From: Ophelia neglecta
Taxonomy: Eukaryota
DNA: 64,000 nucleotides
NCBI GenBank assembly: GCA_965285935.1
Contig: OZ260661.1
Coordinates: 82,398,001-82,462,000, forward strand
Direction: 5' to 3'
Positions 9,068 to 64,000 of this stretch are shown in pieces. Under the pieces are notes generated by a model. It did not search any database. It saw only the letters and a program-made list of their open reading frames with translations, and was not told the origin of the DNA. The position numbers were made by a program, and so were the translations under genes. How positions within the stretch are numbered: the stretch's first letter is position 1; each line of letters begins with the position of its first letter.

Positions 9068-12000
9068 ATGATGTTGTCGGAATCACTCAGACAAGCCGAA
9101 AACTCCTTCCGACATGGATTATACAACGAAGCAAGTAGTTTATATACAGGAATTTTAAGTGGTCAATTGTCTACAAAGAAATTTGACCATTTGAAGGAGG
9201 CGAAATATATTCTTCATTCTAACATTGCAACCTGTCACTTGAGAGAAAACAAACCTTCTTTAGCCTTGGAGCAGGCAAAGGAGTGTGAGACGTTGTTACC
9301 CACACCAAAGGTGAGAAGCTGAGCACTTTTACAATTCCAATGTCATTAATTTTTTATAAATCCGGGGGGGGGGGGGGGGGGGGAGATGGTTGCCCACCAA
9401 CATTTTATAGGTCCTAACTTAGTCAAAAGCGTGTTCTTGATTTTAAATCATCCTAACCCATCTACAGAATTCAGAAAGTGTTGTCACATGTTAGCTTTAC
9501 ACTTTACATTCAGCTGTTATCTTGAATAATTCTCATTTATTTTGCTGAGCAAAGAAAATGAAAAGCATTGCTACAGTTTTAATTTTAAAAGCCTATCATT
9601 ATATAATACTAGTATTTTCAATATTTTTGGCAAAAAAGAAAATGTCACCAAACTGTCTTAGTTTGTCTACGTACATTACTTTATTTATAAAATTCCCTCT
9701 TGATCTATTTTGGCATGCTTTTCATCAATTGACCACACAAGTTCATCTTTTATATGAAATAGTTCTTTTTTCCAGAGTTTCTTTCTTCAAGGACTATGTC
9801 ACACCCAGCTCCAAAATAATAAGGCAGCCATAAAAGCATATGTTTTAGCAGTAAAATGTGCCCCAGTTTTCAGTGATGGAGGACCTGATGGAGAGAACAG
9901 TAGTAATTACACAATTAGTGAAGAGAAGAAGTTTGTTCTAGGGTGTCTTCTCCAGGTAGCCTTTACTCAGGATATGGGTCAGTATTATATATACATATAA
10001 CAACATTGTATTACCGGGTATATGCGTTCATTATTTCAATCTGGACCTGTATATAACTTCAAGCCAGTTAAGGGGGTCATTTTTCTGGACCTGTATACAG
10101 GTCCAACCTGGTGAAAGGGTTAGGGTGAGGGCTTATGGGTATACAGGTTCCCAGGCCAGTTTATTTTCAAGACAATAAATGGCCCATAATTATGAAGCTT
10201 AGGCTTAAGTGTCATTAAACCCTCAAAAATGTTATGCGGTGTTGACTGAGTATAAATATTAGTAATGTTTATTTATGCACATGTTTGCATGTTTTAAAGG
10301 TGCGGAACTGAAGTCACAGTTATTGAAGAATGGCTTGGAGCTAGAAATACTACTGAGTATAACGGTACTACTGAGAGATGGGCCGAGCCTTGACATGTGG
10401 CTAGACCTCTTATTTTCTGATCGCGATAGCTACCACTTAACTGCAAATTTAGAATTGTTGCCTATACTAGAACTTGGAGAGAAGGAGCTGGAGAAAGTGT
10501 TAAAAGACATGTTTGGTGATGCAGTAGGCATATGTTGCAATATTACCAAGGGTAGGGGCTTACTTTTCTCTGCATATTAATGAGCAGTTAGACTCCTGCA
10601 TTAAAAGCCTAAAGGAAGGTATCATATTTTTTTTCTAGAAAACTGTATGTATGCACAAGTACATGTATATGGCCAAATCACTATTAGATATTGGTTAGAT
10701 TAAGGTATAGCTTTTAGTTCATCTTTCTCATTTAACCTAGTCTATTGTAGTTGCAAGGACTGGACAGACAGATCACCTATCCTTTTTTGTTATAATCAGT
10801 TTTTATGTTTACTTTATTCATAGGGGGCTGTCACAGACTACACTACTTAATCCATCTTCTCGAATATACCAAGACAAACAAAAAACACTTCCAGACAGCT
10901 TTGGGACCATCCCCCCTTGATATTGTGTGTAATACATACCAGAAAAGTGCTGCCGAAAAAGAACCTAAGACTTGCCACGCCACTGAATCTCCGCCATCAG
11001 AGGCTGCCATGGACATGTGTTATTTGTTAAACTTATTGTTGTCTGTTGGATTGATGGAAAGAAATATCGAACAATTCGGGGACATGTGGTCAGATTTGTC
11101 AGAATCAAGTTCTCTGATAGACTACATAAACAAATGGCTGGAAACAGGTCATATTTTGGGATATTTGTGACTTGAAATTGGTGTATAGGGGTATAAATTG
11201 GTTGGTGTCACATCATGTTCGTAACAGGTGATAACCACTGTACTGCCTGGCACAGGGGCATTATAACATATTATCTATGCATTTCATTTTTTTAAAGTAC
11301 AAGTATCTTATTGACTTCATTGTCTCATAATAAGATAACACAATCTCTATATATTTTTAATTTCATTAATTTTTATTCATTAATTTACCTCTTGTAGACG
11401 AAGCAGAAAAGATGAGAGATGTCCACATAATGACAGCTGATCAAGTCTCGCAGTACCTGTTGAGTCTTCTTTGCAGTCAACTGAGAGGCAAAGTAACGGT
11501 CATTCTCCCCCACCTCACAGTTCTCACTGAATGTGATAAAGCACAAGTACTAGGTATCCAGGGAAACAACATGGCATGGAAAAGTCTGGTTCAGTTGTGT
11601 GTGTGTAACCAGGGTTTAGGTCTTCTCCAGATGTCTGTTGTACTTGAACAGCTTGGTTGTCCCAACCTAGGAGATTCGGTTTATAGAGGTAGGAATTCAT
11701 GTTCAACATACTTTCAGAACACAAATTGTAGTCAATGACGTCTCATAACAGCCTTAGGATACAAGTTACAAAAAAATGCCCCCCAGAGAATTTAGTCACC
11801 ATGGGGACCTTATAGCTGTGCTAGTCCAGTGCTGGCAGCAGTGGTGGCAGTGGCTCAATGCTATAATAGCTAAACCCCTTCATTCTGAAAAAAGAAAAAC
11901 GATGCCAGAGTTGTACAAAATCTCTCTGTAGTGTGATAAACGTTTAATGGTGCAAGCTAGTCATATAAAATGTATTGAATACTAATGGATCATATTTTTG

Positions 12001-15000
12001 CATGATTAGATAACTCCCCAAAATGGCTATGACAGGAATGATATATTACTATATGTAAAATAAGCAATTGACAGTCACAGTCTGATTCTGGAGGTAAAAG
12101 AAGCACTATGATATTCATGATAATGTGCATCTCCAAATCACAAACTAAGGGAAGTTAAACATTAATATTAACTCTTTAGAATTACATTTGGGTCTTGACT
12201 GGGAAAAACTGATGGCTCTCATAGCATTCTATCCAATTTTGATGAAGTATAATTCTTTTCAGTGTACAAAAGATTGTTTCTGCGACCAAGCAGCATTATG
12301 AGGAAAAGTACGGCCCTGAATAACCTGCACAGCAATTTTTCTACAATAACAAAACACCTCATTGAGCAAGATAATATTCTGCCTGTTCTTCTTGATTCCT
12401 GTGAAGACTTAGGTGATACTGGGAGATTTTATCTAATATTCTTCACAAAACAAGGACAAATTTCAAAGAGATCTATACAAGGCTACATATCATCTGTTCT
12501 AGACTTTTTGAGTTTCATAGAATACGGATGTTTTGAGGAGTCAATGATCTGGATTATTCTCAAGGAGGTTGGGTGTGCCATTGAGTCTAGGGTAAAAGAC
12601 TCAGATCAGCTGGGTGAGTTCTACCAACATGACCACACTTTTAACTTTTATAATGTATATAGGAATAGCCTATGGTTTACATCATAATTTTCCTTCCAAT
12701 GAAACAGCAATTTACAATTATAAGTAGGTGCACGCTTATTTATTATTATTAATATTATTATTATTAAAGTCATTGTTTGTAAATGTTTCTATCAAACAGT
12801 ATTAGTTAACAGAAAATATTAATATATCATTTTCTTATTTCAGATTGTCTTGAGCCAAAAATGGAAACTCGTCTGAATTTATTAGAGACATCACCTTGGC
12901 CTGGTAAAATGTGTGATATTTCCATGTAAAGTAATACATTGTCACTAAAACCTTAGCAGTTCTCAATACATGTACCACTACCATGAATTTTGACCCCTTG
13001 CCCTGAGTAAAGGCTAATAAATGAAATGATGCCTTAAATATAAAATTTGTCTCAATGTTTCAGAAATCGAGAGGGTCAATATTAATGAGATTTTAGCAGT
13101 GATTTCTTCATCAAAGACACCGAGACGAAGGAGACGCAATTCATCAAAGTATACATACTTAATTGTGTTTTATCTGATTGCTTCAAAGGAAAATACTGAC
13201 AAGGGAATACCTCAGTAATAACATACTGTGATTATTAACAAATTGAATGTTGTTTTGAAGGGTTAAAATATTAGCACATTTATTAGTTGGGTCGAGGGGC
13301 CTGTTGGTTGATGTCTTGATGAGTTGGACTGTCAGCCGGAAGGTGGAGAGTTATAAATCCTACCACTGGCCAATGTGGTCAGCACAAAGATGTATGGTGC
13401 CAAGGCTTCATAGCCGCCAACCATCCAGCTGTATTCAAGTGTGCCAGCTTATATAGGGAGTCTTACCTGCGATGTACTGATATGACATCCAGGAGAAAGA
13501 CGGTTCTCAGTTGATTGCACCTCTGTAACAGAAATATAAGCAGCACCTTTGGAATGCTTTAACTTGATTGTCATATAATTATTAATTTTGTTGAAAAAAG
13601 TCACCTTAATCTTATTCTGCCAGTCTTCATCACACAGGAAGCTAGTCAAAGAGCCAAGTCAACCGGAGGAACTAAAGAGCTTTGAAAGTGAGCTAGCTGA
13701 CCAAGTGGGCTGTCAGTCCGTGGGGCTGACCCAGGTGTACATGCCCTGTGTACCTAGTCAGCCAGCCATCGCTTCGGCCATCATACAGAGACATATCTGG
13801 TACCTCTCAGAGTCAGCAGATAAGGATAGAGAAGATGTTAGGGGTGAAGATGGAACTGCTGATTCGGAGACTGCAATGAAAACCAGTGTTCTTGTTGTTG
13901 TTCCTGGTAAGAATGCTGTATCATATGCAGTGAATGATTTAAACAGGTATTTACCACACCTGAAAATAGGAGATCATGGTGTTTCTGCAGATCACAGAAA
14001 ACAAGGCAAAGGAAAGGGTTTCGTTCACAAGTCAGGGCTGGCAAAAGTACTACAGAACAAGGATATAGTTGTCTGTGCTGAAGAAACATTTAGCAATTGT
14101 TTGAGATCTTCTTCTGTTGCTATAAACCAAATGACTCTTGTTGTATATCTAAATCTTGACACTTTTTCCAAAGGCTTCCCTCCCTCGATCAATTCTCAGG
14201 TGGCTGCTAAATCAATGCTACCCACGATTGTCATGTTTTCCAAAAGTATATTACAAAGAGAGGACACGCTCAGAACTTTTGGTGTAAGACGCCATCTGAA
14301 AGATCTGTTTGATATGTGTTTTCCCGAGGTGATGTTCCAGTCAAGTGCACTTAGTTCAGGCAATCTACTGGACGATAGCTCAGCACAGACCAAGCAGTCC
14401 TGGGACCTGCTACGGAATGCTTCCTCCCAGTGCTATGGCTCCATGGGATATTTGTCAGGTATGTACCTGTAGGCCTATATGTGAAAGCGAATGATTGTTT
14501 TTGTTCCAATTTATATTGATATAAACACACTGGCGTGAATGATGTGCAAGTAGCAGCAGGTAGTTGAAATGGAGTTAACAGGATATCATATTTATTATGT
14601 GTCCATTGTAGAAAAATCAAAACCCAGAAAAGGTACTTATATTTACAATTATTTGTATTTGAGGTTAAAACTTTTCTAATTGTATTTTAACAAAGTAATT
14701 GTAATTTGCAGGTTTGTTGATCTGCGAGCCTCATGGTGAAGAGAACAATCAACTCAAAGTGGAGGAATGTGTAAGAGATATTTTACCTGCCTCTCTAACT
14801 GTCTCCAGCTTACAGGACATCACAAAAATGCCAAAGTCCAAAAGAAAGGGCTGCAACTTGTACTTGATCAAGTATCATCCATGTATTGTGCATGTATGTC
14901 AGGACAGTCTCTCAACAGATGTCAACTTGGTATATTTAAAGAGAAGTGGGGATGCCTACGCACTTGCAGGAACCAATTTGAAGAATGTTTTACAATGTCT

Positions 15001-15022
15001 TTTATTTTCTAATCTAACTTAA
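9068..15022 (+). CDS. Uncharacterised ~979-aa protein: TPR repeats, helical/CARD-like modules and a degenerate Dicer/RIG-I-like (SF2) helicase domain
   Basis: Ten GT-AG exons: 9068-9310, 9776-9977, 10300-10551, 10824-11147, 11398-11688, 12263-12613, 12844-12903, 13064-13148, 13638-14458, 14712-15022 (2940 nt, all phases compatible, no internal stop). TPR-like segments: AENSFRHGLYNEASSLYT, LHSNIATCHLRENKPSLALEQAKEC, SFFLQGLCHTQLQNNKAAIKAYVLAVKC. Gene structure is well supported; domain calls are by eye. Confidence 0.85.
13289..13555 (+). mobile_element. Degenerate tRNA-derived SINE in intron 8
   Basis: tRNA-like head (ggttgatgtc..ggactgtcagccggaagg..gagttataaatcctacc) followed by ccagctgta...cctgcgatgtactgatatgacatccaggag, resembling the conserved central domain of marine-invertebrate SINEs. 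Confidence 0.5.
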
Positions 15023-23200: not shown

Positions 23201-26200
23201 TTTACCTTAAGTATTTTAAAGCACTCTTGTATTTTTCTCATATCAGCACCAACATTAAGAATTGCCTCAGGATCTGTATCCTCCAAGTAATACTTAACTG
23301 CTTCTCTACATCTGCAAAAAAAGGTGGAATAATCTCAACTCCTTGCTTAGTGGTATAGATAAGGTTAAAAAAGCTTTGTTAATAACATTATCTATAAAAT
23401 GTAGAAACACGAGGCTGCTGGCATCCCTGTTGTCTTGGTTTGAAAAAAAATCTGTTTTAGCCAAGGGAGAACATGGGATGCCAGCAGCAAATCCAATTTA
23501 TACAGCCTATGAGCAATGTTACGGTTTTCCCATTGATTGGATGAGTGTTTCAAGCAAAAATGGTCAATATTTAGATAGTTTTTTTCTTTGTGCTTCGATT
23601 TATTACTTAGACCAATGATATTAATAATAAGCTATATGTTGGCCCTTCACACACTGGCTTAAAGGCACAATAATGTCACAATAGGCCATCTGATCTAGAA
23701 CAGTTTGACTTTAATGCTTCTGAACACACACATACAAACTGTACCACACCCCTTGTGAATTTAAACTAGATCTCAGCTATCACTACAAGCAGGTCAGACT
23801 TCTATATTGTGTACCCTCCCTAGGATAAGAGTTGTAATTAATGCAATCAAACTGTAGCTATTGATACCAAGGGTATAATTTCAAACACATTTCTGTCTGT
23901 CAGGTGTTGGCTCAAGAGTGTGAGTCAAGAGATAAGAGTCACAGTAACCACACTCTCAGTGATTGGGGGCAATAACCAAAGTATGAGACATCAATGAGCT
24001 GATTATTTACCTCTCTCTGTCCTCATCTGTTAGGTCATCAGTTCGCTGTTCCCCTGTTGCCATGGCTAGTTCATCCTTCAACTGAGCTATTTCTCGTTTG
24101 AGCTTCAGTATCATCAGTTTAGGATCCAGTTCCTCATTGAGTATTGCATCATTCTTGATAAGGGCCACTCGCTGAGAAAATCTGCATGTTGATATCGATT
24201 CCTGTCAGTAGAAAACTACAATAACATGTTGTCTTTATTAACTCCCCTCCTGAAGGTAGCATAATATGCCCTTTCAAGTCAGAACATATATACAAATCAA
24301 ATATTGTAAGATTCAAATTTGCAAAGCTGATATCAAACCATTGTTCTTAAGGGTTAGTTTCAGTCAGAAATAATATTCTTTCAGCAGAATTTTCATATTT
24401 GAAAAAAACCCAGTAAAACACAGTTTTTCTAAAAAACTTATTCTGAGGAATATAAGGCAAGTTAACTATATAGGTTTGTGCATCTTCCATGCATAACCCA
24501 AGTTCAGTGAGACTTCGTTAATTATTTTCATTTATAGAAATAAATTTTGTGGAAATATTATATAATTTCAAGTAAACATTAAAAAATGATTTGGGCAGTC
24601 ATTCACACTCCACAATATTATTGGTAGAGTATAGTATGCTGGTCAAGTATCCAACATATATTGGAAACAAGAAACTCACAAAATATTCTGCAGTGGGTTA
24701 TTGCACAAAAATCCTGTAACCTGCTGGAACCACATGCTCAATCATTTGCTTACACTTTTCTTAACTGCAAACTTTCAAACAAATTATCTACAAAACCAAT
24801 ATGTTTGGCTGGTATAAACAATTTACATGTATTTTGCTTTTTATACCACACTTTTTTTTTTTCTTAATTCATTAACTCAGGTTGAAGAGATATCTAATCC
24901 AAAATGCCTTAGCATATATGAAACTCAGCAGTTAATGAATTAAGCTGTTAGCAACATAACCAATAATAATTTATTATACACCTCAAACTGTTTAAAGTTA
25001 TCTGGAGCACATTTCCAGTTTGACCAAAGAAATTGCTACACCATTATTTAGCTGCATTGAGCACAATAGCAGAGTAAAAGAGGAAGTAGTAGGATAGGTA
25101 GTAACAATGGAAGAAGAAAAGAGGAAGTAGTAGTATAGGTTGTAGTATGCAGGTATTATGCATAGTCATTCACAGTTGTACTTACATCTATATTTTTCTT
25201 CTCCACAGAGCAAGTAGCAATCATAGTTGTCATACAGTTCCCACCTAAGCTGTCCCTCAGCACTGAGGTCATCATAGAGTTCCTATATGGTATGTGCTGT
25301 CTGTTCTTATCAGAGAGGGAGACAATAACCTGGCAAAGAAAATTTTAGTTAGTCAAATTTGCTTTATATTAATGCTAAAGATGACTATATCTATGTTATT
25401 AAAAATAAAGTATAAATTACTTGATTATACCATGAAATAAAGTCAATGTATTGGCAGCAAACAAATCTAAAATGTTTTTAAGGCAGCAAGAAATATTAAT
25501 TGATACTCCAGGTCCCAAATTTAAAAGTGACATATAACCTGATGTAATATGTATATAATATTATTGGAAAGTTTGAATATAAGCCATACCTGTTCCAGAT
25601 AGTGAAGAGATAAGTTGATATATTTGGCCTCTGTAAGTAATGTTCCACTCACTCCTGTTTTAGAAACCCTCTCTGATCTAACCATTTTAACAACAAGAAG
25701 AAAATGAGCATTAAATGACTTAAAGATAGAAGACTTAGAGACATTTGCTCCGTAAACACACCATTGCTAAAGAAATAGAAATAGCTGTTCAGTAGTAAGT
25801 AGGAAGTAAATAAATACCCTGCAAGATCCACTAGATGCAACTTAGATCTTCGAAGTGTTGCTGAACCCACCTCCCGAGACGACACATGTACTGTGAATAT
25901 ACAGTGGGAACGGGTAGATGCCTGGTTCATAGGAGTCTGAGAGAAGAAATTAACTTTTTCATTCATCCCTACTATATACTCCAATATAAAGATATCAAAT
26001 AACTTTTTACTATATATACCAAATATATATAAATTTTGCATCTAACTGTTGAACAAAATTTGTACGAGATTGCAGAAAGAAATATTTGGGAAACCTCAGC
26101 TATCATTCTATTTGTATCCCCCAAAAATAGTAGGTTAAGAGCCTCCTCCTCACTGCTAGCAGCATGGGTGCTGAGGTTCTTGAGGTGAATGTTCTGGTCA

Positions 26201-29200
26201 TTATCTTCCATCAAAGATACCTTTCTAAAGGATGGAAAAATTCTTATTAGACCTGGTGCTGGGACACATTGCATAAATGTTAAAGTAGTATAGAAAATTA
26301 AAGTAGTACATGTATGGTGACTCGGCGTGTTTGTCTTCCAAGGTAACACAAACTCCACAGCTGGATGTTTGACTAAGTGTATACATGTCTATGTATATTG
26401 AACTCTGAAAATTTGTTCCTGTTAAAGAACTCCAAGTGACCCCCCCCCCCTCTGCCCAGATTTCTTACTATATATAGAAAAGAAAGTGAGCCTATGTATG
26501 CAAAGGGGACTTAATACACTTTGCACAAAAACAGGTAAAGCAATTGTACTCTGACATAAGTATTTAATTAACTAATTCTTATTAATGTCAATGACTTTTA
26601 AATTGCTAAATCTAATATAGGTACCTGTTCATGATACACACAATGATGAATATAAATGGTTGAAAGAATGCTGTGCTTAACACTTGTTAAGCAAAGGAGA
26701 CTGGTAAGATCTTAAATGGTGTCAAAAATAGTTACAACAAAAGCTTTATATGTTCACACATTCTAAGGAGATAAGTAGCCAGAGGGCCATGCAAAAACTA
26801 CACCCCGCTTGTTTACATGCATCAGAATTAAAACTAGTAAACTTTGCCAACTTTGCCAAAATTAGGGCAATTAGCATTTCAAAAGAGGCTTGAACATCTC
26901 AGGTGTAGCCTCGAGGTTTGCTCTGCTTGAGATGGTCAGGTAATAGCCTGAGAGACTGGTTCTCCATAACACTATTCTAGTTAGTTTTTGAAATACACAC
27001 AGTACTTCTAAAATGCTGTCTGTATAATAACCTGTATGGTAATTTTAATACTAACATTTCAATTAGTAACCAGTTAGGTAGATTAAGTTATGTGAATATC
27101 AATAGTGAAGATTTAATATTCATGCCCCTGCCCACATTATATCACTATTTGGCAAAGTAGGCAAATTTACTTTGCCTAATCAATGCTTCTTAAATTAATT
27201 TTCCACACTACATACATTTAAGCATATGTTTGTATGCTTGCAATGTTTACTGCCATAGTGAACAAAACCATTACCACAAATATCAGGTAAAGCCATGTAT
27301 AAACTGTACTTATATATAGAAGAAACTCAAATAATATGAGTTTACCTAATTCCTTTATATGTAGCAAAAAATAATTTCAAACATTGTCAGCTAACAGAAC
27401 TTACGGCAAATCTTCTAACTTGGCAGCTTCATGCTTCGGGTCCAACAGATCATAACCAGCTTCATTGTAGATTTCCAGATAGGATATATATGAGGTAAAC
27501 TCATACTCTGTGTTCTGAAGGGGAAAAGTAAGGCTTATACTTCTGAACATATATTATTATTAATTGAAGAACATGGTTTGGTGAAATAAACTCTTACCTG
27601 CTGATAATATTCAAAAATGTATGATAGAGTTCTTGGGATAATACCACGGTCTATGTATCTTTCAGCACCTCCGGTAATTGTGAATGTTTTTCCACTCCCA
27701 GTCTGGAAAATATTTCACATTATTTATCATTCACCTAAATTTGTGAAATAAGAAAATGGTGAAAAACAGTTTTAACTTTCTTACTGTAGAAAACAAACTT
27801 GCAGTACTCTTAAAAGTAGTTGCCAATGAGTAATCTAAGCAGAAAGCAAGCACAAATTGTTTTCCAAGTTTTAAGAAGATGATCTACATTTCCTCATGTC
27901 TAGTAAATTACTAATTTATATAAAGACGAACAATATACATTCCTGAAGACAGGAATTTTGGCATTCCAGAAATATACTAACACTTGCCATATCGGGACAA
28001 CAAAAGTGACCAGTGTAGCATATCTTTTTTAACACTTTTTGTTCTATTTTCATTTTTATTTGGCTATATTAAAAATGCATCTATTAAAACTTACCTGACC
28101 ATATGCAAAAATTGTTCCATTATAGCCTCCCAGAACACTAAAACATAAGCACACCAAGTATTAAATACTCATTTTTACCAGCCTATGATGAAACAGCACA
28201 TATAATCTGACATATTTGCCAGTAAAAAATAATGTATCTAGCAGACAAAAATTCTGTGAATACATTGTGGCGGTCCAATTATTGTGCCTGATTCCTATAC
28301 GGTAGCATGTATAAAACCCTTGCCTGCTTTAACATTAAGTTTCCAGATTATTATTATAATTTTCTTATCTTATTTGCTAGTCCAAGTAATTAATTTGCCT
28401 GTGCAAGAAAATGTAAGTATGAATGTTTTGCTAGTCCATGAAAAAGTAAATGTCAAGGCCTGGGCTCCCTTCAGCTTCTGCACCTCAGGTTATGGAGGCA
28501 GATATATTGGCCTTTTTGTTTCCAAATGATCGGCTTATAACTTTTGATAGTACTTACTTATTTATAACAGGTTTGGCAACATTGTCAAATATTTCATCTT
28601 GTTTTGTGGTTTGGTCAAACACTTTTTCAAATCTGAAAGAAATGCCACATACAGGAAATTCATATATTTATATAAAGTTTTAGCAATTTGATGCCACAAT
28701 TTCCACAGAGGGGAAAATTAAGTTCCATGTGAAGCAATCAGAAGCATTGTCTTAATTTTTAATTGATGCTTCAATTTGCAGCACTGCTGTATATATATAT
28801 ATATATATATATATGTAAAAAACTATGTTCAATTAACTCAAGAAATACAATAATGTTGATACTTTTCTTCAAAAGACATTAGAGTGGTTCAAAATATTTC
28901 TTAGTAATGACATTTTAAACATAAATTATGGCTTAATTTATACACATGTAATGAGGAACTACACTTGACATGCTGTAACAATTACAATATTACCAAGTTA
29001 TAGAAAACAACTATTCAGTACATATAGACATGTATAAAGAAGTATGGCAATTATGTTAAAAACTCACTGGTTTCCAGTTGTTACTGCTTAAATAGAAGTG
29101 AAACTGGTAAAATTCCACAACTTACCAGCCAAACAAACTGGTAAATCTCAATCCACCGTTCGGTCTTTAACAATGTTTAACAGTTTAAGAAGTCATCCAA

Positions 29201-47622: not shown

Positions 47623-50600
47623 ATGCCAGCAAAGAAGGGGTTTTGCTGGTGTATAGGGGGGTCTGCACCCCCTGAAATTTCATATGGATTAGAAAATGGG
47701 GGAATGACCCTTAAACCCATTGAAGTGGATATTCCAATGCCACAAGATGAAAATGAACTCAATGCATTATTTGCGGAACTGGTGGTAAGTGCAATATTTC
47801 AGATACATAATTTATTAGTAATGTACGTTAAAGCCAATGCTACATGTTGGTGTAGTGGAGCAGTGCAATGTGTCATTTTTCATCATATACTGCTCATGTT
47901 GTATATACAGGTACTGCTCCCTTCAACATGTACCATGCATGCTCAGTATTTCCAGGATACATAAGACATATTTACCAGTCAGCTAATAAACCCAACCCAC
48001 ATGCTGCATTTTGCCACATCCTATATTTCATATTTGAATGCCAAGTATGCTTCCTTAATCTGTAGTATCTACATAAGCTGTCCCTAATCTCTTGCTGTCT
48101 ATGGGTGCTGGTGAGATTTAAACTGCTCTTGTTGTTATAGTCCTTAAGAGCTGGGTATAAATTCAAGCCATCACTGCCATGTGTCTGTGATCAGCCTAAT
48201 GAGACCTCCAGTACACGACTCCCCTCTGACCAGATAACTGGCGACCTGCTCTAAGTGTTATGCCTAGCCCCTGTCAGTCTGATGTTTATTAGGATGCCTA
48301 GCCTCATAGGCCTAGCTATTCTATTGAGTTTACATTTTAAAATATCTCCTCTCACATCAGCAGGAAGCCTCTGGGACATATATCTGCTCAACTTAAAGAG
48401 TTTTCAAAAAAGCTTGACCTCACATCCAGCATGGGTGCCATTAATAAAACCGAAGAACTTGAGCATAGTGAGATCTGTTAAAAAATAATAAAACTCACTA
48501 TAGATATAATCATTGCCAGACTCACTAATAAGTGTGACAGGAAAGTATGAGATTTAAATGTTGGCTGGGTTCATTTGAGGGCACAGGTACTAAATATTGT
48601 GGTAACCTCAGTAGGAAAAGTGACTTTGTTGCACACTTTATTACGAAATAATTAGTTCCCTGCTGTAAACAAAGCAATAAGAAATCTGTGGATATGAGAA
48701 GCATTCAACCTTTAAAGTGGGACCTACAGCTGCACCTTAAGGATTCTGCCAAGCACTCTAGCATCTGTTACTGAGCCAAGCTCGGAGAGATTGTGGCTTA
48801 TTCCATGCAGTCTACCCACAAGGCCTTTGACTGCCTGAGGAATTTTGGATGGATATAAGCCTAGAACCACAGGTTGTCCAATTCCCTTCAAATAGGTCCC
48901 TGGTGACCAATGCTGCATGGCTATTGGTTTGAATAGCCCGGAGCTCCCTTGACCATGTATCAGAGTAAATGACCATCTCTTGTCTAGCGGCCTAGTGGGA
49001 TTAGAGATTAAGATTCCTTTGATGACTCAAATTGTCCATTGTCTCCTCACCCACTGTGAATAAAGACAATGGGTCCGGTTTGGCTGTTAAACAGGCTTCC
49101 AGCAATATCTGTGTAAAGTATGTTTAATAGAATTCACAAATTGATCATTTGGTGTCCCAGTGTGGGCTGGTGGCTTTAAAATGTTAAACTTCAGCTTTAC
49201 AAGAACCATGCCTGGGTAGTGAATGTGTTAAAAAGTGACAAGTTGCTACCTCTTAACAAAGCTTATCACAAACTAACAAAAAATGTTAGTTGTTGGTTGA
49301 GTAATCTCTTGCAAAAAAAAGTGACTAGGAGTCTTTTCACCTAAGGCATATAAAACAAAGATATGAAAATTAGAAACTACATGTCTTTGTTAAAATACTG
49401 ATTAAACATATTGGTTCAGTGCCTTGATTTATCAGATTATTTCAAGAGACTCTTACTCCCACTAAAACATCTAAGTAGAATGTTCCAGACAGCAGAGTTT
49501 TTGTTTGTGGATGAGTATCCATTAGGTGGAGAAGGAATTGGAAACTCTTGATAGTTTGTCAGAAAATTCTATCAGTCAATCTTTAGTTCCACTGAACATT
49601 CTGTGTGCAGAAGTCACTGTGTGCTCCAACATGCTGAATACAAACATGAAACCTGCAGATTTTTTTTGATTATTTTCTCTTGTAGCAATAAGAGGGTGCC
49701 ACCTGTACTAATGGGACTTGAAGGCAGACAATCCCTAAGCAAGGTAGTTACTATTTTTGTGGAGAAAATTTATCTGAGTGCCTTCCAAATAAAAAGCAGA
49801 AAGGTAATCTGTAGGCAGCAGGAGATGTAGTTAGTTTACAGGTAACACCAGATGCCAGCAAGGCTTGTTGAAGGACAAATCCCCCGTCTGCCTACCACAG
49901 CTTACCCACAGCACACATGTGCTATCTGCTGATATGAGCTATACCTGCCAGTAATTTTTCTTCTTTTTCTTTTTGTTGAAATGCCACAAACAGCTCAAAC
50001 ATGGGTGTTTTCTCAGCTCACTTGTACTATCATGGTTATTTTACTCTCCAGTTAATCTTTGAATGATACACTCAACTGAATAATGAACAGAATTTTTATG
50101 GCTTCTAATCTTAGCACTGAGTATTGTGCTTCTAAAGAACATGATTGTCAGTAGCAAAAGCAATTTATTTTATATTTGCTGTTCAGGATTTGCTCATTTT
50201 TTCAATGCTTGAAACTTCTACCAATGGCTTCGGGGCTTATCATGATGCACATCTTTATCTAAAGCGCCCTGCGGCACTTGGGCCTTATCAAACAGACCCA
50301 AGTTAGTGACACCCTGGTGCAGCTTACCCCGGGGCATGAGTATAACTTAAGCTGAGTTTTGGCCAGTTTTTCACTATATCCCCCCTTCGTCTTAGGTGGT
50401 CAGGTCGAATGGTCAAGTCGTATGTTTTAATAATCCCTTGTATTTATAGATATTTATGCAGAAAGTCAAGGGAGTTATCTTATTTTTACTCTGGTGATTT
50501 GAGACCAATGTTTAGGGAGGTGGATGTGTTAGGAGCCATGAAGGAAGGCAGAATAGAGGCAGATGGGAAGGGATGCAGGACAGCGGCAGATGTGAAGGGA

Positions 50601-53600
50601 GCAGAACGGAGGCAGACGTGAAGGGGGCAGAACAGAGGCAGATGTGAAGGGGGGGGGGGGCAGAACAGAGGCAGAAATGAAGGGGGGGGGGGCAGAACAG
50701 AGGCAGACGTGAAGGGGGTGGGGCAGAACAGAGGCAGACGTGAAGGGGGGCAGGACAGAGGCAGACTTGAGGGGGGGGAGGGCAGAACAGAGGCAGACGT
50801 GTAGGGGGTAGAACAGAGGCAGACGTGAAGGCGGGAGCAGAACAGAGGCAGACGTGTAGGGGTATAACAGAGGCAGACGTGAAGGGGGGCGGGGGGGGGG
50901 GCAGAACAGAGGCAGACGGAAAGGGATGCAGGACAGAGGCAGACATGAAGGGGGGGGGGGGGCAGAACAGAGGCAGACATGTAGGGGGTAGAACAGAGGC
51001 AGACGTGAAGGGGGGGGGGGGGGCAGAACAGAGGCAGACGTGAAGGGAGGCAGATGATTTTAAGCACTTTAAACTCCTATCATGCCTATAGTGGTTGACT
51101 ATGGACACAAGATAAAAACATGAGGTATTTATAAGTACACCAGCACACTGTGGTTATAGAAGAATAATATTTGCTAACTGTTTTATCAAAGAAATATTGA
51201 CACTTTTCCTGTCATTTTAGCCTACAATAAGTTAATTAATAACCATACACATATTTTATACAAGTAGCATTGATTTGACGTCTTTATATCATACTAGCCC
51301 AGCAGCCATATACAGTTCATATGGATGTTGACCTTGTAATTATCATCAAAACAAAGTTCTAAGCAGTATACACTTAGTTTTTCAGTCAGCAATAACAGCA
51401 CCACCCAATGAACTTTTCAAGTGATTCACAATCGGTGCAAAGAAAATATAGCTTCCAGACTTTTGCTTTTGGTACAGGCCGGGAGTGTCACCCAGTAATC
51501 GCAATTATAACAAAAATGTAACTTTTTATCTGTTGTCTTGTGATGTGTCTCATGCATTTTTTAAGTTTGTATGTTCTAGTTGAGAATCCTTTATTCTGTG
51601 TAATTGTGCTGACAAGTTGCTGATAAGTAGTATTTCTAGCATTGAAAGGTGATCTACTAGGCCTGGCTGTATGACAATGGGAACTATTTTAAAAAATGTA
51701 TTGTTTCAAGACCAGTGGAGCATAAATGTACCAGGTAGTACCTAGCAGACAAAAATATATAGGTCACAGAACTTATAGATAAATTACCATTTTAAGTACC
51801 AGTTTTGAGTAACATGCCATTTAAAAAACCATGTGTTCAAAGTCATGAATTATAGCTTCTATCAAGGGTTATAGTGGAATAGACTAAATACATACACGTA
51901 CTTGTATTCTTCTAATGGTAAGGAGCAGACGAAATACAAATGATTTGTTTATGTAATGAAAGATATATATATGTTTGTATTCATGAGTATTAATTTTAAG
52001 TTATCAACAATTATGATTAACGGTAATATACAATTTAATTTATCAGTAGTTGTGTAATGTTAAGTACTGGATTTATTGACACATGTATACACACCTTAGA
52101 TTTAACTTTTTACTATTAATAATATGTCAGTTATTAGAATTTCCCACAAGCAGGGAATACTATTTTCATTTTCCCCACAATAGTTGTCAAATCCTCTTTA
52201 CATCTTTAAAGCACTTGCCTTAGTGTCAACTATCGTTTAAATGCTATGGGATGATAGCCTTGGACCAACAGGATCATGTATTCCCTGCTGCATTTCCAAT
52301 TAACAAAGTCAATTACAGTCACATATATTCATGTACATGTATGTATAAAAAGCATCTCTTCAGCGTCTGTACCATGAGACCACATTTCATGTTTCAAGGG
52401 ACATATACAACAAGTATAGCAAGTTGTAGGGAGAAAAATCATTGTGACATGAGTATGCTTTTCTACAGTGAGCATGAGGCCAGCATGCAGATGCATTCTA
52501 GGCAAAAGCTGGTGCAGAATCTGTCACAGCAGAAGCTGTCACACTTTCTCAAAGCAATCATATGTCTAACAAATTACCATAGAAAGAAAAACATTAAGCT
52601 ATCTCAGATAATTTTTTTTTTAAAGATGTAATCAGTGTTAGGGGATTATTAGTCAAACAGTGCTCTAATTCTAAATGCTAAAGAAAGGCTTGCACAATTA
52701 TATTGCACTGTGATATTTAAATGAATGTGGTCTTGTGCCATGGACATTGAGGGGGTTTTAAAGGCATGTTTTCTGTATGAAGCTTTTTTTTTATCAAACA
52801 TCATCTAAATCCTTGTGACAGAATTATCAGATTGTTACCCAATGTGTAAGATCTTTATCCTGTTGGCCGCTCTCCGCTGCAGTTAAACTCTCATGTCTTC
52901 ATATGGGTTTATATCTGACTACATCTTAGATTACAGTAGACTTGGGAGGAATATTGATTGTGCTTGATTTGTTTCCGAATTGCATCATTGCTCACCATGC
53001 ATAAATACCAACAGCCAATCATGTCGTAGCTACAGTCGGTGATTAGCTGGCATTGTTCATATTCCAGGAGGAACACAATGCAGCCGCTAGATGATTTATG
53101 TTGCTCCACATGTTAACTGTGTCTGGTGTTATGAAGGCCAGTGCCCCGCTGGTCTCCTCTCTCAGCCCCCACTTCAACACCCTCAACCAGAACATCAGGG
53201 AAGGCTACTACACAGATAAATCAAACTGTACTCCCAAAATAATGAGTTGGATCAATAATGTAAAGCAATTTATCCATCTGTGGATAGCTGTATGTCTCAT
53301 GAGGACAGACTGGCTTGAAGGACGGGAAGCTGGCTAGCACCTGACAGCACTTTTCCATCTAAGTTTTTTATTCCCCCTTGATAACGCATTGCATGGATGA
53401 TGGTGCCATGGTGTATTTATTTATTGAAGATGAGATTTGAGGGCCTTGACTCAGTCTACATATGAATCAAACATAGATTGGATAACAATTATAGATTTTT
53501 GTCTCCTCTCTATTGCATGGAGAATGCATGCCAACCATGAAAAGATCTTGACTAATGGTCTTTTTGTGTTGGGTCTAATTATTTTCATTTTGGTTGTATT

Positions 53601-63400: not shown

Positions 63401-63853
63401 GGCAATTGTTATAATCACATTATTTTAGTATTGCATTGCATTTTGTTCACAGAACAAAGTTAATGAAACTATATGGAGGGATATAGATGACACCAAAGTG
63501 TACAGGACATTAGATCTGGGGGAATTTGAGAAGAACTTTTCCGCTTATCAGAGACCAGAAGGCAGTGACAATGACATTTTTGGCAAAGGAGCCGCAAAAC
63601 CTAAGGAACTATCAGTCATAGATGGCAGACGTGCTCAGAATTGCACAATTTTATTATCAAAACTTAAAATGACCAATGCTGAGCTAGCGAAGGCTATTCT
63701 TAGTGTGGACACTCAGGAGGAGATTCCCAAGGATATGTGTGAACAGTTGTTAAAATATGTCCCTACACCAGAGGAGATACAGCTACTTGGTGAACACGAA
63801 CATGAAATAGAACAGATGGCACGGGCTGACAGATTCCTATTTGAAATGAGCAA
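47623..63853 (+). CDS. DAAM: Dishevelled-associated activator of morphogenesis (DAAM formin), 5' part: GBD-FH3, coiled coil, FH1, start of FH2; continues beyond the window
   Basis: Exons 47623-47784, 54468-54557, 59265-59333, 59796-59884, 60065-60200, 60471-60668, 60958-61068, 61181-61351, 61505-61622, 61765-61894, 62075-62324, 62659-62818, 63000-63083, 63223-63326, 63453-63853. Diagnostic motifs: [66 protein letters not shown], poly-Pro FH1, [31 protein letters not shown]. Confidence 0.96.
50547..51057 (+). repeat. G-rich minisatellite, ~17 units of CAGAACAGAGGCAGACGTGAAG(G)n
   Basis: Constant ~22-nt core followed by a variable-length G tract; purine-rich strand asymmetry. Confidence 0.92.
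57367..58182 (+). mobile_element. Non-autonomous Helentron (HINE; DINE-1/pearl-like architecture)
   Basis: 5' subTIR TATATCCGCGAAATGC with adjacent short inverted repeat (GCGGATAT); (GCC)12 at 57405-57440; two ~150-bp core repeats (from about 57480 and 57632); 3' subTIR GCATTCGCGGATATA at 58130-58144; stem-loop GCTGTCGG-cccc-CCGACAGC at 58151-58170; ends CTAGTT. Confidence 0.85.
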
Positions 63854-64000
63854 GTAAGTACAGGTTTTTGAAACTGAGATCTGTGAGTGACCTGTACATA
63901 TGAAGGCAGGGGACAAAACCAATATTTACCATTTGATTTGTCTATCAATAAAAAGCTTCTTGAACAAAGAGTTGACTTGAAGTCGGAGCAGAGTACAATA

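Follow-up and report, generated by a model that had tools for sequence, protein, structure and literature searches.

In RIG-I-like receptors (RLRs) such as RIG-I and MDA5 (IFIH1), most RNA contacts are supplied by Hel2i, Hel2 and the C-terminal domain (CTD), and an RLR needs roughly 450 residues after the first helicase lobe, Hel1, to accommodate Hel2i, Hel2, the pincer and the CTD. The RLR member LGP2 (DHX58) regulates rather than signalling alone, while CARD-only decoys (human CARD16, CARD17 and CARD18) are non-enzymatic death-fold proteins able to cap CARD assemblies or to compete in them. Moreover, helicase lobes of the Hef/RLR/Dicer type are kept as non-catalytic scaffolds in the N-terminal domain of XPF/ERCC4, in SHOC1 and in Dicer helicases of low ATPase activity. 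To our knowledge, the known RLR regulators, LGP2 and the CARD-only decoys, are vertebrate cases, and RLR signalling outside the vertebrates is poorly understood. Here, a gene of Ophelia neglecta is described that lies on the plus strand at positions 9068-15022 of a 64,000-nucleotide stretch of genomic DNA (assembly GCA_965285935.1, contig OZ260661.1, positions 82,398,001 to 82,462,000 of the forward strand), which is called the window in the following and to which plain coordinates refer. Its product is read, with a confidence about midway between doubt and certainty, as a 979-residue, RLR-derived pseudo-helicase encoded by a conserved single-copy gene and acting as a non-enzymatic scaffold or regulator of CARD-based antiviral-type signalling.

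Compared with MDA5 and RIG-I, substitutions have removed every ATPase motif (Q, I, II and III) from this protein, Hel2i, a detectable Hel2 and the zinc-binding RNA-recognition CTD are missing, and an extra N-terminal module resembling tetratricopeptide repeats (TPRs) as well as about 300 residues outside assigned folds are present. Hel1 occupies a single exon, whereas it is split over at least four exons in the RLR genes of the same genome. LGP2, which is among the top structural matches, carries no CARD but a full ATP-hydrolysing helicase and a CTD; here, in contrast, a CARD-like domain has been kept and catalysis, Hel2 and CTD have been lost. Unlike the CARD-only decoys, the protein is large (979 residues) and combines a TPR cap with the retained dead Hel1 lobe. 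Dicer-2 likewise occurs among the fold matches to exon 9, but in distinction from XPF, SHOC1 and Dicer the protein lacks nuclease, PAZ and RNase III domains, and the affinity at sequence level is to RLRs. Full-text literature searches returned no description of a TPR-CARD-RLR architecture. In a survey of Aplysia, two genes of the RLR orthogroup with CARDs and without detectable helicase or CTD were listed (LOC101858480 and LOC101846979; PMC9334734), which, by analogy, may be the same kind of gene as seen through Pfam. Since both the helicase and the CARD escape Pfam, the present gene would be missed by surveys of the immune repertoires of invertebrates or would appear there as 'CARD but no helicase'. 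The gene is a natural dissection of a receptor and could show what an isolated Hel1 and a CARD do without RNA sensing.

The Hel1 lobe and the C-terminus

Exon 9 (13638-14458) encodes a complete RLR-type Hel1 (RecA1) lobe. All searches and structure predictions were made exon by exon, not on the joined spliced protein. As a single sequence, exon 9 gave no match in Pfam or among PDB sequences, and a language-model search with it, taken as a lead only, placed clusters of DEAD/DEAH helicases nearest (0.87). A profile built from exon 9 and seven relatives, by comparison with 177,635 distinct sequences, had its strongest match in chicken MDA5 (E 6.1e-7 for the whole sequence), followed by human MDA5 at E 0.027 and by a pair of DRH-1 entries, RLRs accounting for four of the five matches. 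The best MDA5 stretch is colinear, beginning with L-R-x-Y-Q-x-E at the Hel1 start, taking in motifs I, Ia and II and reaching the segment specific to RLRs that follows motif III. An AlphaFold2 model of exon 9, calculated on the same profile alignment, reached a pTM of 0.70 with core blocks at pLDDT 85-93 and an alternation of strands and helices, and the 50 Foldseek matches listed for this model were all RIG-I, MDA5, LGP2, DRH-1 or Dicer-2 (E ~5e-8).

The genome itself holds three canonical RLR genes in tandem (C1:36579600-36652745, loci L009-L017), 46 Mb away on the chromosome that also carries the window, each with CARD exons, intact PTGSGKT and DECH motifs, a Hel1 extending over four exons, Hel2 and a RIG-I C-terminal domain. 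The exon 9 profile aligns in order to four Hel1 exons of these RLRs (hhalign E 0.04, 0.004, 0.004 and 0.2) and gave no alignment to four of their Hel2 exons. On the strength of the MDA5 matches, the predicted fold and this ordered alignment, exon 9 is assigned to the RLR-type Hel1, homologous to the first RecA lobe of RIG-I/MDA5-type helicases. The sequence-only reading had named the same lobe; the outcome that would have refuted it, another fold or a closer relationship to an unrelated family, was not obtained, the family profile leading to MDA5 and DRH-1 instead.

The catalytic state was read from the MDA5 alignment and from a motif table of the family, restricted to members covering the respective positions. 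The glutamine of the Q motif is exchanged for glutamate; the Walker A loop is devoid of glycines, its lysine being replaced by Gln or His and its threonine by Pro, Val, Met, Ala or Ile; DECH has turned into L-N-L-D, L-N-W-D, L-Y-V-N, I-H-I-D and similar strings; and TAS is represented by F-S-K or is unalignable. Hence, the proposal that the order of Hel1 motifs persists without the catalytic residues is confirmed by the family data, in which all covering members have lost the Walker A lysine, DExH and TAS, and the strings on which it was founded (motif I-like, Ia-like, Ib-II ending LNLD, and PTIVMFSKSIL) are all present in the exon 9 translation. Because no member covering the Q, Walker A, DExH and TAS positions keeps the canonical residue set, the catalytic-residue loss is, judged from these alignments, ancestral to the family.

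Only about 102 residues, encoded together with the stop codon by exon 10 (14712-15022), follow Hel1. As the protein ends some 100 residues past this lobe, it is devoid of Hel2i, of a recognisable Hel2 and of an RNA-recognition CTD. No match in Pfam was found for exon 10, and PF11648 occurs genome-wide only at the three canonical RLR loci (C1:36.60-36.65 Mb); PAZ or tandem RNase III domains gave no Pfam match in any exon, so the early end without RLR CTD or RNase III domain that had been noted from the sequence is retained. A further suggestion, that GLLICE at the start of exon 10 corresponds to the Hel2 motif IV strand, is not supported: the string itself is there, its G arising from a split codon, but a four-species exon 10 profile found nothing relevant in the PDB, and a comparison by hhalign with four Hel2 exons from the canonical RLRs of this genome was not significant. 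By eye only, a K-x-C-N-L stretch of exon 10 resembles the strand after motif V in these RLRs. According to the ranges of the structural matches, the last helix of the exon 9 model may overlay the pincer region.

Two other assemblies (L003 and L006) have exon 9 and exon 10 side by side as well, and the exon 10 orthologues of these and of a further contig, L002, stop after about 100-113 residues each. These observations bear on an alternative in which the protein is still a ligand sensor that binds RNA or a nucleotide non-canonically through the degenerate Hel1 and a cryptic second lobe made by exon 10, and signals via the CARD-like domain. The strand and helix positions of Hel1, including an Ia-like strand with its proline, are well conserved in the family, and exon 10 is kept in four species with an alternating strand/helix-like pattern, as such a sensor would lead one to expect. 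However, the ATP-site residues are all replaced in every covering member and the parts making most RNA contacts in RLRs, i.e. Hel2i, CTD and a detectable Hel2, are absent, and a retained sensor function is therefore regarded as quite improbable.

Gene structure, orthologues and selective constraint

The gene comprises ten exons on the plus strand, which were re-derived from the raw sequence by exon-length and phase arithmetic. They add up to 2940 nt, or 979 codons plus stop, and thus reproduce the open frame of about 979 amino acids in ten phase-compatible exons that had been reported for the locus. All introns have GT...AG borders, the in-frame exon pieces are free of internal stops and their phases chain; an in-frame TGA is located two codons upstream of the ATG at 9068, and the window sequence contains no N. 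Exons 3 to 7 are each of phase 1-1, the symmetric exon class that permits domain shuffling.

In the 762 Mb assembly, one copy each of exons 5 and 9 is found. When 1.84 billion representative proteins were searched exhaustively by HMMER with exon 9, only six clusters came out, all of them short open reading frames (ORFs) on eukaryote-like contigs, and word-indexed searches for further relatives added one more protein; a scan of metagenomes for further orthologues found none. A full-length annotated or named relative was not found in protein collections either, which is weak evidence given the few annotated animal proteomes these hold in usable form. A full orthologue is present, however, on L002, a 53 kb ENA contig from another species, on which exons 1, 2, 5, 6, 8, 9 and 10 match in the same order, exons 3, 4 and 7 being represented by ORFs in between. 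The introns of this orthologue measure only about 100 bp, its start methionine is at the equivalent position and its stop at about the same place. Identity to L002 amounts to 54% in exon 5, 47% in exon 9 and 31% in exon 6.

Two exon 9 copies from one assembly, L006 and L030, differ with a dS of 0.18 and a dN of 0.04, corresponding to a dN/dS of 0.22 over exon 9. At DNA level, L030:1891-3139 and L006:935-2179 are ~88% identical, and a 4-nt insertion splits the frame of L030 in a variable linker; the L030 copy could reflect a paralogue on its way to a pseudogene, haplotype divergence or a misassembly. Polymorphism was assessed with genomic contigs that span the whole locus and come from a different sample of O. 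neglecta. Among the differences listed, beyond which there are ten more, 14 of 20 exonic single-nucleotide polymorphisms (SNPs) are synonymous and six non-synonymous, none of the four SNPs in exon 5 changes an amino acid, and the four indels are confined to introns. The dN/dS ratio, the synonymous bias of the SNPs, the restriction of indels to introns and the existence of orthologues together indicate that purifying selection acts over the entire reading frame, the dead helicase lobe not excepted, and the earlier description of the gene as intact rather than a decaying pseudogene is in keeping with the exon 9 ratio and with the distribution of SNPs and indels.

The same data speak to a gene-prediction artefact, i.e. 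to exons distributed over two or more transcripts (for example, one from a small gene for the TPRs and one from a gene for CARD and Hel1) or to an unexpressed relic. Such an error would be in line with the poor conservation of exons 3 and 4. None of the RNA runs searched contains the locus, and the three public runs aligned to it are genomic contigs showing no splice junctions. Exon 3 (10300-10551) has GT-AG borders and an open frame, and exon 4 (10824-11147) is visibly alignable to L002 in its C-terminal half; in tblastn, neither exon matched L002, exon 3 having a positional counterpart there only. Yet the phases chain across canonical splice sites without stops, the ten-exon order recurs with start and stop in L002 where introns are very short, and SNPs, indels and dN/dS all bear the marks of a constrained coding sequence. 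An artefact is consequently held to be highly improbable.

CARD-like and TPR-like domains

Exon 5 (11398-11688), the best conserved exon, encodes a putative CARD-like, six-helix death-fold domain. Its AlphaFold2 model, obtained from a two-sequence alignment, shows six helices at a pLDDT of 74 and a pTM of 0.64. Foldseek with this model returned weak E-values and a list filled by CARDs, a shape search of the ESM Atlas led to CARD, MAVS-like, RIPK2 and caspase-2 clusters (TM 0.61-0.67), and in a Foldseek-independent scan of 48,161 solved chains the top 50 were nearly all death-fold structures with CARDs first. At sequence level, exon 5 matched neither Pfam CARD nor CARD_2 at E up to 10, is absent from the at least 84 CARD_2 matches found genome-wide, and gave no significant hhalign result against nine of the genome's own CARD_2 exons. 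As these sequence-level tests fail, exon 5 is termed a CARD-like fold, that is, a modelled six-helix bundle superimposing on solved CARDs, and not a member of Pfam CARD. The CARD-like assignment made from the sequence is thus supported for exon 5 at the level of the fold, by the model and the structure scans, and fails at the level of Pfam sequence matches. With respect to the tandem CARDs of RLRs (PF16739), one CARD-like fold, that of exon 5, is modelled outside the CARD_2 list, and exon 6 may be a second.

Exon 6 (12263-12613) codes for a conserved domain with no match in Pfam or among PDB sequences. The idea that exons 5 and 6 might be recognised as CARDs by sequence was dropped, since PDB profiles gave chance matches only (SRCR, complement C5, MAD2) and hhalign against the nine CARD_2 exons was not significant. 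The CARD_2 (RIG-I/MAVS-type) matches in the genome, at least 84 of exon size, form many near-identical clusters on C1 and C5; CARD exons are greatly expanded in this genome.

Exon 1 (9068-9310) contains the start codon and TPR-like repeats 1 and 2, and exon 2 (9776-9977) adds repeat 3 followed by a Gly/Pro-rich tail. In Pfam, exon 1 matches TPR_2 at residues 49-79 (E 0.089) and the equivalent L002 site TPR_1 (E 0.032), while exon 2 matches TPR_1 with E 0.03 in the window and E 0.0042 in L002; all of these matches are sub-threshold, with 13-17 bits against a Pfam cut-off of ~27. Hence, the TPR assignment of the sequence-only reading gains from the recurrence at the same positions in L002 and falls short of the Pfam threshold throughout; the N-terminus is consistent with a TPR-like module of about three repeats. 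Exons 3 and 4 have no Pfam match.

Between exon 6 and Hel1, two short linker exons follow. Exon 7 (12844-12903) ends in PWPG, as does its L002 counterpart, and exon 8 (13064-13148) carries a conserved basic run of five Arg and then Ser-Ser. This TPRRRRR-x-SS string is identical in the window and in L002:9794-9898, and similar Arg/Lys-rich runs containing Ser are found inside the Hel1 insertion of the relatives P0002 and P0008. The basic motif may be a nuclear-localisation signal or a site for a basophilic kinase.

Proposed function

With no ATP site, second lobe, Hel2i or CTD, the protein would have no RNA-activated ATPase switch. It would be able neither to hydrolyse ATP nor to clamp double-stranded RNA in the manner of an RLR, and for this reason a mode of action through protein-protein contacts is proposed. 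The death-fold domain would engage CARD assemblies formed, for instance, by RLRs or by MAVS-like adaptors, the TPR cap might bind a peptide ligand or a chaperone, and the dead Hel1 could serve as a rigid scaffold or as a surface docking onto active RLRs. Overall, CARD-based antiviral-type signalling would be regulated by capping, decoying or bridging. Such a scaffold or regulator role fits a genome rich in RIG-I/MAVS-type CARDs and is the most economical reading.

A serious alternative takes the same protein to be non-immune, namely a housekeeping TPR scaffold or co-chaperone-type factor, e.g. in the assembly of ribonucleoproteins or other complexes, in which the CARD-like and Hel1-like domains are reused structural relics. 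This would explain why the gene is single-copy, slowly evolving, conserved between distant species and under purifying selection, in contrast to the lineage-specific expansions typical of invertebrate immune genes, of which the 84 or more CARD_2 exons of this genome are an example. Furthermore, the N-terminal three-repeat TPR resembles chaperone-binding TPR modules by eye, and the neighbouring genes code for a kinesin and a formin and are not immune genes. On the other hand, homologues of the core can be recognised only among the antiviral RLRs and the one other assigned fold is CARD-like, and a purely non-immune function is regarded as rather unlikely.

Several points weigh against the proposed regulator of CARD-based signalling. 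Its connection to immunity is by analogy, and the E-value of 6.1e-7 for MDA5 sums individually weak stretches, the best of which scores 14.8 bits. The CARD call depends on an AlphaFold2 model from a two-sequence alignment, with Pfam and profile-profile comparisons not significant. About 40% of the protein (exons 3, 4, 6 and 10) is outside assigned folds, and the joining of exons 1 to 10 in one transcript is deduced solely from their compatible phases and from the colinear gene on L002.

If the scaffold reading is extended, the gene would represent an old, unnamed family of RLR-derived pseudo-helicases serving in some invertebrates as dedicated regulators of antiviral signalling through CARD filaments, with the dead Hel1 docking onto active RLRs or filaments. 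This wider claim is put forward tentatively and with more doubt than trust; if true, it would add a third solution beside LGP2 and the CARD-only decoys.

Introns and surroundings of the gene

Within intron 1, a run of about 25 G is found at 9365-9390, at which the contigs from each of the three public runs are interrupted or depart from the sequence, and the local assembly of this intronic stretch is uncertain. In intron 8, a candidate repeat at 13285-13500 was discarded, as the search gave a self-match only.

The neighbouring gene on the opposite strand is represented by a kinesin motor-domain exon (25649-26358, minus strand; Pfam Kinesin E 7.9e-11), and a formin FH2-domain exon (63498-63857, plus strand; Pfam FH2 E 7.7e-28) lies at the 3' edge of the window. 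Upstream of the gene, at 430-1764 on the plus strand, two long ORFs of 303 and 118 amino acids are rich in Ser, Thr, Pro and Gln and have no Pfam match; they may be what is left of a mobile element or form a gene without introns. Finally, two overlapping ORFs of about 195 amino acids at 50486-51108 on the minus strand consist of proline-rich repeated units and probably represent a tandem repeat of low complexity and not a gene.

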